Shown: positions 39,751 to 47,165, counted from the first letter of the stretch. The stretch: 64,000 nucleotides of DNA from Parasitella parasitica NRRL 2501 (GCA_025201805.1 MU619272.1:1-64000), one strand, 5' to 3'. A program made the numbers and translations. Notes: generated by a model from the sequence alone, not told the origin.

Positions 39751-40625
<875 letters not shown>

Positions 40626-43389: not shown

Positions 43390-44180
43390 TTACCTTGGTT
43401 CTTCACCATCCTCTCCAGCATCGGGTGCATTCATACTCTCACTTTTACACGAAAAGAATATCATCCGTTTTAATTTTCGATTGAAAAAGAAATAATTTAT
43501 GGACCATCTTTGATATACCGTCAGTCGCTTTTTATCAATCATAGTTTACTGTACTCACAAAAAGCCCTCTGCCTCCTCATTCATTGGGTCATCGTCCACA
43601 TCAGGGTTGAAAGTATAGGCATCGCAATCATCCAATTGAACAATTTCGTCCAGAATATCCCATAATCTTCCATGTTTGCTGTTTAGAAAAGAGAATGTAT
43701 TTATACGAAATGGCTCACCTCAATTTGTTCACTATCACATCGTTTCCCAAGTTGAATAACGTTGTATTGACAGAATTCATGACCATTTCTACGGAGGGCA
43801 GTTTCAGGAACTGATCAGGCCTCACGTCTTCAAAATCGTGCTCGGGGAAAGCAGCGTTTAGGGTGGCTAATAAGTAAAAGAATGTCTTGCGAGGAGCTGC
43901 TTCGGTCAATCTACCAAAAGGCGAAATAACTTGTAATTCATCAGGTGAGACGGAGCCAGGCGCTGACAAATATGTATTGTATCTATCTTCAAGCTTTTTG
44001 TATAGTTTTTTGTCTGTGCCAGCAGATTTGCCTGTGGAATAGTTCAATAACCATGTTAATCAGCAGCCAGTACAACTTACAGGAGTACGCCTCTACTCTC
44101 CCCGTTAATATACACTCAGATGTTTTCCATGAAAATGCACTATTTATTAAATCAAGAGAATCCACTTCCAGGAATTTCAT
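43390..44180 (-). CDS. MAF1: RNA polymerase III repressor Maf1, multi-exon; 3' end uncertain (a further exon to ~43260 is possible)
   Basis: MKFLE, GRVEAYSCKSAGTDKKLYK, SPFG, RKTFFYLLATLNAAFPEHDF, WSINYFFFNRKLKRMIFF. Confidence 0.93.
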
Positions 44181-44497: not shown

Positions 44498-45625
44498 ATG
44501 CTCCACTCTCTTCCATATGAAATTATATTACTCGTTTTGATGAGGTTGAACAACAGAAAAGATATATTTTCCTTTTTGGGGACTTATCGTGGATTCTATA
44601 GTCTGATCCGAGACGACTCGTTTTGGCGTGATCTTGTCAAGAGAAAATACGATATTAAATACAACATCAACAGCAAAAATCAGTCGTGGTGGGAGTTGTA
44701 CATCTCTGGAGATGCTAATCAAATGTGCTGTCATCTGCAAGACTACAATGCCAGGTCATTAGAAAGCAAGCGCAAGCTCTTATGGGAATCAATTCAAAAC
44801 CTGAATAGACTATGCTGCAGAAGCGTACAATTTGAACAGTACGGATTGTGTATGGAACCTCAGTGTGAATTTGTAGGCTGTGGAGATGTGTTTTTTGAGG
44901 AAAGTGAGTCGTATCCTGGTCATTTAAGAGCACATCACCGCCAAGCACGCCACAATGTCATTCTGAAGCTTTCGCCCCTCAATTTCATGGAGCTGTGGTG
45001 CTACAGTTGCGATGGTCCAGTTAGTATATGTGCCCATTGCATAAATAATAGCAATCCATTCATTGCATTGATTTCCTAGATAGGGCACTATGGAATTCCG
45101 CTCGAAAAACCCGTGTCCGAGAAATACATGTGCCAAAAAATATTGCATTTCATGACAGCTCTGCCGAATCACAATGATCCGATACTGAGACATAGTATAG
45201 TTGAAAGAAGAAGGATGATAGAGCAAAGGCTGTCGCTATTTCAGCAAAACCATGATTTCTCTTACTTGATCGAGAAAAAATGGTTTACAAGATGGATAGA
45301 TTTCTTGATAGGTAAATCAAATGAACTGCCAGGCCCATTGGATAATTCCATACTGTTTTTTCCTAATGACAAGCAAAAGTTAAGGCATGATTTGATCATT
45401 GGATGCGATTACGAGTTGGTGGGTAGAAGTATTCGTGCCTACATCGAAAGAGTGTACGGGCTACAAGATGGATCAAACATTGTATCTGGAGGTAAAAATA
45501 ACAGCAATTTTTATCACAACAAAAAAAAGTATATATTCAAACAAGAGATGATAGATGACTATTTGGGCCAACCATTATATCGAGGTATATCACAATCTGC
45601 TCTTCTTCACAGAAATTATCATTAG
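44498..45625 (+). CDS. F-box + ZnF-UBP + DUSP protein with no USP catalytic domain; intron 45020-45079, possible in-frame intron 45492-45545
   Basis: F-box LHSLPYEIILLVL...DDSFWR. ZnF-UBP CCHL...CMEPQCEFVGCG...HLRAH...H...LWCYSCD. DUSP YLIEKKWFTRW...PGPLDNS...DYELV...YG. Confidence 0.82.
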
Positions 45626-45627
45626 CA

Positions 45628-47165
45628 TCAAAATCGAGAGTAATTCTTAACCAAAACTCGAACAATTTGCATTTTTTCTTGCTTAAATAAATAGTCTTTC
45701 TTTTGCCTTTTGCGTCTACTACTATTATGATCGTCATCTTGATCTTCTGTTTCATCGTCGTCGTAGCTTCTTTGCCATCGCTGGTTTTTTAGCTTATTAT
45801 AGGGTGATATTCTGTTTTTGGGATTTGCGGGTCGTAAAATGCGACTCCTTTGATGATGAATGTCGTGTTTTACAGATGGTTTTTTGACAAATGTCGTAGT
45901 GTCATTAGAAATATGGCTTTTCTTTGAAACCTTGAATACTGCTTGAGATGTGCGACGTATTTTTGTAACACCTTTCTTGCCATTAGAACCATTAACTCTC
46001 CTGATGATGACTCGAACCGTTTGAGCTTGCTTCCATAATTCTCTTTCAGAAGTTGTTTGTATCCGAACAACGGGATGTTTGATTTGAGCTTCGAGTTCCT
46101 CTTCGCCAGATGTAATTTTTTTTATCTGAACGATGGGATGCTTTATCTGAGCAAGCAACTCCTTCTCTATAAGGTTCGGCTCCTCCTCAAATACGGGCTT
46201 CTCTATTTGAACAATGGGGTGTATTATCTGAGCATCAAGTTCTTCATTCTGCGTAATAGTTTGTTTTTTCTGAGCGATGAAATCCAGCTTTTGCTTTTCC
46301 TTTTTGGCCGATTTAAGCAAAGAGGAGGAAGAAGGCGAAATAGTTTTGTTGAGCGACTTTGGTTTAAATTGAGACACTAGTTTTGCTCGACTTGGCAATC
46401 TGATTTGTTGTATCAATTCCTCGCGGAGAGCTTCCTCCTCCATTATGAGATCATATTTGCTTATGGGTCTAGTCTTGAAGGTGGAGATAGTAGAGTGCTT
46501 GTCAGAGGGTTTGTGCTTGGATGTAGAGGCTGTTGGTGTAAATGTAGACTTTGAGCTAGCGTTCAAGTTGGAGTGCGATAAAAAGTACGTGTTGCTAGAA
46601 GATGGCTGATCCAAACTGATGGGTGAATCTAATGAAGTGCCCAAGTCTCCATTGTTCTCTGTAGCTGGATCAGCCACAATGAATCCTAACAGAAAAGATA
46701 AGTCATATGATATTGCCATATCAAAATGATAAAGCTACCTCTTGATTTCTTTCCCTCTACAACATGAACCCTTTCTCGATACATTGCTTCCTGATTGACC
46801 TTGTCTCTGATGTACTTGCCAAACCTTCTTTCAAAGGATGGCGTTTCATAGACGTTACCAACACCAATCAACGACCCTTGACATTGCTTTGCTTGCCGAG
46901 GCCACAGGTTAACTGTCAAATCTACCAATTTTTTGATATCTTCGTCGCTATTTATTTCTTCTAGCCATTGCTGACCGTGTTCAGGATGCTGTTCTAGATT
47001 AGTGAGATATTGAGCAAAATTGGAATTGCGAGCTCTATATTTAATGTATCTCACTAATCTAGATTTGCTAATTGGAAAAGCTGTACCTTGATTTGGATTT
47101 TGGGTTTGTTTTTGAAGCTGTTGAAAATACTTTTCGTACGCTTTACATTCTTCGGAAATAGACAT
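45628..47165 (-). CDS. Uncharacterised basic, probably nuclear protein with internal AQIxHPIVQI repeats, 2 exons
   Basis: ORFs 46686-47165 and 45628-46719 are joined in frame by a GT-AG intron (~46686-46738). Confidence 0.7.

Follow-up and report, generated by a model that had tools for sequence, protein, structure and literature searches.

A putative F-box receptor family of early-diverging fungi with a USP20/33-like zinc finger and a single DUSP domain, seen from a Parasitella parasitica locus

Introduction

Can the docking modules of a deubiquitinase be carried by an adaptor of the opposing, ubiquitinating machinery, and if so, how were they acquired? This question is raised by a small gene of Parasitella parasitica NRRL 2501 that lies in a 64,000-nucleotide stretch of DNA analysed here as a whole (MU619272.1:1-64000, hereafter the window). 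An earlier note, made from the sequence alone, had read the gene as an F-box followed by a ZnF-UBP finger and one DUSP domain. It had likened the finger and the DUSP to those of the deubiquitinases USP20 and USP33, and had proposed that a copy of such an enzyme lost its protease domain and was converted into part of an E3 ligase.

In human USP20/33, the ZnF-UBP and DUSP2 are substrate-docking modules (PMC13376213). The finger binds the motif [KR]xxL[NED], the basic residue of which touches Glu55 and Asp59, and shows no measurable binding of the ubiquitin C-terminus, and DUSP2 binds [FW]x[IL] through a hydrophobic pocket lined by F825, W828 and E829 (PMC13376213). Since both modules dock substrates in the human enzymes, the best reading of the window protein is an SCF (Skp1-Cul1-F-box) substrate receptor with deubiquitinase-type docking, which would hold its targets via the finger and the DUSP2-type pocket. 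By analogy with USP20/33, we put the probability of this reading at roughly 60%.

Results

Gene model and domain content

The gene is located on the plus strand and consists of two exons, 44498-45019 and 45080-45625, which together encode 355 amino acids. Exon 1 (174 codons, with the ATG at 44498) carries the F-box and the complete ZnF-UBP finger, and exon 2 (181 codons plus the stop at 45623-45625) encodes linker helices, the DUSP domain and a C-terminal helix. The 60-nt intron between them (45020-45079, plus strand), predicted from sequence and homology, has GT..AG borders (GTTAGT...CCTAG), with an in-frame TAG stop at its end. Exon 1 aligns with residues 1-172 of the annotated Mucor circinelloides orthologue P0043 (74% identity) and exon 2 with residues 173-329 (67% identity). 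Because the two exons abut without a gap on P0043, as they also do on the family alignment, the predicted 45019/45080 junction is supported by homology.

P0043 lacks 25 residues of the window's exon 2 (aa 138-162; window 45491-45566), a stretch that resembles the C-terminal helix of other orthologues and is probably coding in the window; the Mucor gene model would then lack it through a deletion or a splicing error. A second intron covering these residues was rejected, as no canonical GT..AG pair excises exactly that stretch. We also rejected the possibility that the gene is a pseudogene or a mis-modelled fragment of a longer USP: its frames are intact, its orthologues are conserved Mucorales-wide, and the contig holds no UCH match.

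The upstream neighbours, both on the minus strand, are exons of a Maf1 regulator (43715-44047, 95 bits) and triosephosphate isomerase (39836-40471, 268 bits). These are ordinary housekeeping genes unconnected with the F-box gene, and the gene context is uninformative. Downstream, a convergent 363-aa ORF (45628-46719, minus strand) is rich in Ser, Lys, Glu and Gln and has no match in Pfam. Its stop codon and that of the F-box gene are 3 nt apart, so that the 3' transcript ends must overlap if both genes are expressed.

Domain searches for the window gene were run per exon or on database orthologues. The F-box (44504-44641, plus strand, aa 3-48) matches PF12937 with 27.7 bits (cut-off 24.3) and has an LPxEI start and an FW motif downstream, giving the motif of about 45 residues by which F-box proteins are recognized; a second Pfam model, PF00646, scores 20.4 bits, marginally below its cut-off of 20.5. 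The finger, assigned to the USP20/33 type by PF02148, phmmer searches of the PDB and family profiles, spans 44726-45010 (plus strand, aa 77-171). In exon 1, the Pfam match to zf-UBP (PF02148) covers aa 122-172 with 32.7 bits (cut-off 22.7), and all twelve Cys/His zinc-ligand positions of the finger lie within this exon. The DUSP exon contains an RRR..E motif, followed by W..W and PGPLDNS. Its DUSP2-like domain (45257-45481, plus strand, exon-2 aa 60-134) matches PF06337 with 52.9 bits (cut-off 29.3; 54 bits in a genome-wide Pfam scan) and is assigned the DUSP fold. No match to the UCH catalytic domain (PF00443), whose Cys box and His box define the USP deubiquitinases (peptidase C19), was found with Pfam in either exon or on the contig. 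The architecture described in the earlier note therefore holds: the F-box-like, zf-UBP and DUSP matches that it expected from a domain search all exceed their Pfam thresholds, and UCH is absent.

Paralogues and USP genes in the same genome

We searched the genome (32.8 Mb, 450 contigs; window gene on contig C36) and found three further genes with the same layout, making four paralogues in all. The first (C83:91466-92584, L044) consists of three exon pieces and its finger has lost the GCG cysteine; the database protein P0015 from Parasitella parasitica matches it exactly over the three pieces. Immediately upstream of its start codon, a long run of N, representing either a gap in the assembly or a withheld stretch, is followed by a poly-A tract (L044:230-1423). 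The second (C25:270196-273423; L003:1456-2481, minus strand) is a single 341-aa ORF with a remodelled finger below Pfam zf-UBP detection. The third (C23:109399-112641, L004) is multi-exon and keeps Arg at the finger pocket position. Another database protein labelled Parasitella parasitica, P0001, shares 86% identity with exon 1 of the window gene, and P0048 and P0015, from strains under the same species name, are about 0.27 changes per site apart in the tree. These marked differences suggest considerable divergence between the deposited strains, or a mislabelling.

Genome-wide mapping placed zf-UBP at eight loci, the Pfam DUSP at four and USP genes at about 25-30 (37 UCH matches). Besides the window's own contig, no contig in the genome has both zf-UBP and DUSP matches, which leaves no other contig that could combine zf-UBP, UCH and DUSP as USP20/33 do. 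The sole DUSP-bearing USP is a Ubp12/USP4-15-like gene at a separate locus on contig C80. The earlier note had asked whether an intact USP20/33 exists alongside the window gene, and the genome has no canonical ZnF-UBP, UCH and DUSP enzyme. A Skp1 gene is present on contig C64.

An old, multi-copy fungal family

An exhaustive phmmer search with exon 1 over 1.84 billion representatives identified a family of at least 40 clusters at 50% identity, all of them at most 432 aa long and none of USP length. One of the 40 clusters, P0035 from a rotifer, matched through its F-box only and was rejected as a member. The named members come from Mucorales (Mucor, Rhizopus, Lichtheimia, Absidia, Cunninghamella, Phycomyces, Pilobolus and others), Zoopagomycota (Thamnocephalis, Basidiobolus) and Chytridiomycota (Chytriomyces, Borealophlyctis), with environmental contigs in addition; none of the named members is from Dikarya, animals or plants. 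Among 37 near-full-length members, Pfam detects DUSP in all 37, F-box-like in 30, zf-UBP in 24 and UCH in none.

In a maximum-likelihood tree, the non-Mucorales members form a basal grade. Within Mucorales there are three groups: a Mucorales-wide clade with the window orthologues, its sister clade, to which the C83 type belongs, and a more divergent one with the C25 type. The family is strongly conserved among early-diverging fungi and old, with an origin that we place before the split of Chytridiomycota, Zoopagomycota and Mucoromycota, and it is neither a one-off nor recent. A conversion from deubiquitinase to E3 as a local event, as the earlier note pictured it, thus has to be abandoned, given members in Chytridiomycota, Zoopagomycota and Mucorales and four paralogues in this genome alone.

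The earlier note knew of no F-box protein with this architecture, and our literature search likewise gave no paper on the combination and no published description of an F-box/ZnF-UBP/DUSP protein. The note had also held that an already described, widespread family would speak against it; the family is indeed widespread in early-diverging fungi, and the description is what the search did not find. What we report is thus a multi-copy, undescribed family of early-diverging fungi whose sequences public databases already contain. The Mucor 'dfl' F-box-like regulator (PMC12957363) was considered as the same protein and rejected, being a different one.

The named members are all annotated as 'hypothetical' or 'X domain-containing', apart from two that were automatically named 'USP33'. 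These two, P0030 (Basidiobolus ranarum) and P0032 (Borealophlyctis nickersoniae), both 335 aa, are listed by NCBI as 'Ubiquitin carboxyl-terminal hydrolase 33' and have no catalytic domain. Because the catalytic domain is missing and two of the three USP20/33 subfamily features fail, the label is an annotation error, and it looks like a name carried over from the best hit.

The zinc finger resembles those of USP20 and USP33

When exon 1 was run against the PDB with phmmer, the only ZnF-UBP structures matched were those of USP20 (6kcz) and USP33 (2uzg). Using a mixed profile built from 15 family fingers, we obtained 74.8 bits for USP33 and 73.1 for USP20, compared with 47.5 for USP49, 45 for USP16, 43 for HDAC6, 27 for Ubp8 and 19 for USP5. 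A basal profile from nine basal members left the ranking unchanged (USP33 72.6, USP20 68.9, others at most 47.6 bits). On these family profiles, USP33 and USP20 exceed every other solved finger in the PDB by 21-27 bits. In the alignments, the family and USP20/33 have C-x4-C between two zinc-binding cysteines, and USP49 and USP16 have C-x2-C. The earlier note had pointed out this widened spacing and had called the finger specifically USP20/33-like. Both statements are borne out, with USP33 at 72.6-74.8 bits, USP20 at 68.9-73.1 and USP49 next at about 47.5, and the proposed USP20/33 affinity of the finger is strongly supported.

In canonical ZnF-UBP fingers, the Arg after GCG binds the ubiquitin tail. 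The motif table places Asp130 at this pocket position in the window gene (codon 44885-44887, plus strand, in 'GCGD'), with a 7-residue insert after it. The window finger thus has both the C-x4-C spacing and the non-Arg pocket residue that mark the USP20/33 subfamily, and it departs from the fingers that bind the ubiquitin C-terminus, which are recognized by Arg after GCG and aromatic pocket residues. GCG-D and the 7-residue insert are confined to the window's Mucorales clade, where 11 members share this Asp without exception. Arg at the pocket position is found in the basal family members and the C23 paralogue only, and in the basal members GCG-R comes with LW and WCY, the canonical pocket set. 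The USP20 counterpart of Asp130, counted on the 6kcz alignment, is Glu55. Because the basal members read GCG-R, we interpret the window's GCG-D as a later Mucorales change that parallels Glu55 and was not inherited. The 'CG-D' of the earlier note is accordingly present in the window, and its value as a mark of USP20/33 descent is lost.

The pocket Arg of the basal members means that the ancestral ligand may have been the ubiquitin tail instead of a short motif. The proteins may then be ubiquitin-sensing F-box proteins, in which the finger recognises a free Gly-Gly C-terminus, either that of ubiquitin in unanchored chains or that of some other protein, comparable to the fingers of HDAC6, USP5 and USP16, and which act as SCF receptors or as Skp1-bound sensors of free ubiquitin ends. 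The intact LW, GCG-R and WCY pocket of the basal members and the Arg of the C23 paralogue agree with such a role, as does the overlap of the USP20/33 motif pocket with the ubiquitin-tail site of other fingers (PMC13376213). The window clade invariably has Asp in place of this Arg, together with the adjoining 7-residue insert, so that ubiquitin sensing suits the basal family better than the window gene, and we consider it quite improbable as an account of the latter.

The DUSP domain is closest to a USP20/33-type DUSP2

The DUSP structures in the PDB are those of USP4, USP11 and USP15 only, with no USP20/33 DUSP among them. The sole USP20/33-type DUSP reference was P0082, an environmental/metagenomic fragment of 330 aa, named 'ubiquitin carboxyl-terminal hydrolase 20/33' by its source and composed of a UCH end followed by two DUSP domains. 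With the DUSP region of P0032, a chytrid member, as the query, the one non-self match was P0082. The alignment to P0082 DUSP2 scored 60.5 bits at 38% identity and included the upstream RRxxE helix, compared with 30.8 bits for DUSP1. Similarly, a DUSP profile from the basal members gave 56.8 bits for P0082 DUSP2, followed by USP15 (39.6), USP4 (37.5), the genome's own Ubp12-like DUSP (37.3), USP11 (36.6) and P0082 DUSP1 (34.4). Run against the window's genome, the basal profile found the window gene best (54.8 bits; Ubp12-like gene 34.7), and P0082 DUSP2 as a query matched the window gene as its only locus.

A mixed family DUSP profile showed no separation of P0082 DUSP2 from USP4/15 (53 bits versus 52.4 for USP4), and the window clade's own profile gave P0082 only 29 bits, so the DUSP link to USP20/33 rests on the basal members. 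These comparisons make the USP20/33 affinity of the DUSP moderately supported and, as judged against the one P0082 reference, assign the retained DUSP to the DUSP2 type, not DUSP1. The earlier note's USP20/33-like DUSP thus stands for the basal members, whose DUSP is closest to the USP20/33 type, and is weak with the profile of the window's own clade. As to the note's concern that the modules might group with unrelated USPs, the USP20/33 link is strongly supported for the finger and moderately for the DUSP.

Directly before the DUSP domain lies an RRxxE(x)R helix (45206-45229, plus strand), whose R and E columns are nearly invariant in the family and which aligns with RRQQQEK of P0082. In this alignment the window helix corresponds to the DUSP1-DUSP2 linker of the USP20/33-type fragment. 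By motif-spacing mapping, the F825/W828/E829 spacing fits the WFREWE motif of P0082, and the family keeps its two tryptophans. The USP20/33 subfamily has two tandem C-terminal DUSP domains after the catalytic domain; the window protein has one DUSP.

A feature search of the ESM Atlas with the DUSP exon returned rotifer matches at chance level only. An Atlas fold search for the same architecture gave no cluster with it, returning generic USPs plus one cluster, comprising 56 proteins some 649 aa long, in which a DUSP is combined with RING-type zinc fingers (zf-RING_UBOX, zf-C3HC4). This cluster would add another putative E3 ligase with a DUSP, separate from the present family.

Such mobility of the DUSP among E3 ligases fits an origin by independent shuffling, in which finger and DUSP were joined separately behind an F-box, or in which a ZnF-DUSP protein took up a USP domain and so became USP20/33; in either case the protein could still act as an SCF receptor. 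New C-terminal modules are commonly acquired by F-box proteins, and the margin of DUSP affinity is moderate (17 bits) and gone with the mixed profile. Against shuffling, the finger and the DUSP each independently rank USP20/33 first, their N-to-C order is that of USP20/33, and deletion of a single block of UCH and DUSP1 yields the observed layout, including the conserved helix before DUSP2. We regard independent shuffling as unlikely.

Predicted structure and the F-box

We examined an AlphaFold2 model of the family member P0003, which is 44% identical to exon 1 and was modelled with a 21-row family alignment. The model (mean pLDDT 85.9, pTM 0.79) indicates that the three modules form one compact arrangement, in which the finger insert is the least confident region. 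Foldseek matched the C-terminal part to the DUSP structures of USP11, USP4 and USP15 (rmsd 1.9-3.6) and the middle to the fingers of HDAC6 and USP49. For the N-terminus, it returned weak, sub-threshold matches to Skp1-bound FBXW7, FBXO31 and FBXO3 (E 0.08-1.2, probability 0.23-0.66).

We infer Skp1 binding and ligase activity from an F-box of modest score (27.7 bits). That F-box scores lie just above the threshold, with 7 of the 37 members missing the Pfam F-box-like cut-off, and that non-SCF roles are established for some F-box proteins, would suit a protein that is not an E3 receptor. It could be a non-catalytic competitor or scaffold (a 'pseudo-DUB') masking the same motifs, or a Skp1 partner outside SCF. 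The N-terminal F-box is nevertheless retained in every clade of this old family, with conserved LPxE and W motifs, and Skp1 binding is therefore the simplest explanation of its retention. A function outside SCF appears very improbable to us.

Discussion

Our preferred reading is an SCF substrate receptor that uses docking modules of deubiquitinase type. In this receptor, the finger and the DUSP would dock short target motifs through the two USP20/33-type pockets, the Asp at the Glu55 position and the acidic insert would favour a basic motif over the ubiquitin tail, and the F-box would hand the docked targets to SCF, leading to their ubiquitination. The family may have originated from a USP20/33-like gene that lost a contiguous block of UCH and DUSP1 and gained an N-terminal F-box; the deletion would leave the finger, linker and DUSP2, including the helix that precedes DUSP2. 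As far as sequence comparison can tell, this loss and gain is most simply the route to the family, being the most economical one. The origin would date from before Chytridiomycota, Zoopagomycota and Mucoromycota diverged, with the paralogues multiplying later in Mucorales.

A more speculative extension, to which we give little weight, is that an ancient fungal SCF receptor line took both docking modules from a deubiquitinase, with an ancestral Arg-finger that may read free Gly-Gly C-termini, and that the change from Arg to Asp in Mucorales retuned it convergently. The Gly-Gly targets may be unanchored ubiquitin or C-terminal degrons. The change would be a parallel to the Arg-to-Glu state of animal USP20/33, with the finger turning from the ubiquitin tail to basic motifs as its ligand.

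F-box proteins and USP deubiquitinases belong to opposing arms of the ubiquitin system. If our preferred reading is true, docking modules of a deubiquitinase sit here on an E3 adaptor, and one recognition code would serve two opposite reactions. The family offers a direct test of whether recognition modules swap between the writers and erasers of ubiquitination, and its members are small, protease-free proteins for studying the ligand specificity of ZnF-UBP and DUSP2. It also flags a mis-annotation, as at least two members labelled 'USP33' cannot be proteases, and it adds an uncharacterised, multi-copy putative SCF receptor family to Mucorales, which include agents of mucormycosis. Recombination of modules is common in F-box proteins; the case of ZnF-UBP and DUSP is a clean and conserved one, with a function that we infer.

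Among known systems, USP20 and USP33 (VDU2 and VDU1) are the closest. The window family shares with their finger the C-x4-C spacing, the CPHL start and the twelve zinc-ligand positions, and in the window's clade only, an acidic pocket residue at the Glu55 position. The order of finger then DUSP is the same, and DUSP2 of P0082 is the nearest counterpart of the DUSP together with the RRxxE helix in front of it. In contrast to USP20/33, which are about 900 aa long, the window protein has about 355 aa, lacks the USP catalytic domain and DUSP1, and carries an N-terminal F-box. At the position of Glu55 in USP20/33, the basal family members carry Arg, and the predicted activity is the opposite one, ubiquitination versus deubiquitination.

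Like FBXW7, FBXO31 and FBXO3, to which the Foldseek matches are weak, the window protein has an N-terminal F-box followed by substrate-binding domains, but its substrate-binding part consists of a ZnF-UBP and a DUSP. The ubiquitin-tail-binding fingers of HDAC6, USP5, USP16 and BRAP2 have the same fold, and the basal family members keep their Arg, Trp and Tyr pocket residues. However, such fingers reach about 19-45 bits on the family profiles compared with 69-75 for USP20/33, and the window copy has Asp for the key Arg. Finally, the DUSP domains of USP4/11/15 and fungal Ubp12 share the fold and are the best structural matches in the PDB. These domains differ in being N-terminal, paired with a UBL and carried on an active USP, and those of USP4/11/15 score 17 bits below the USP20/33-type DUSP2 on the basal family profile.
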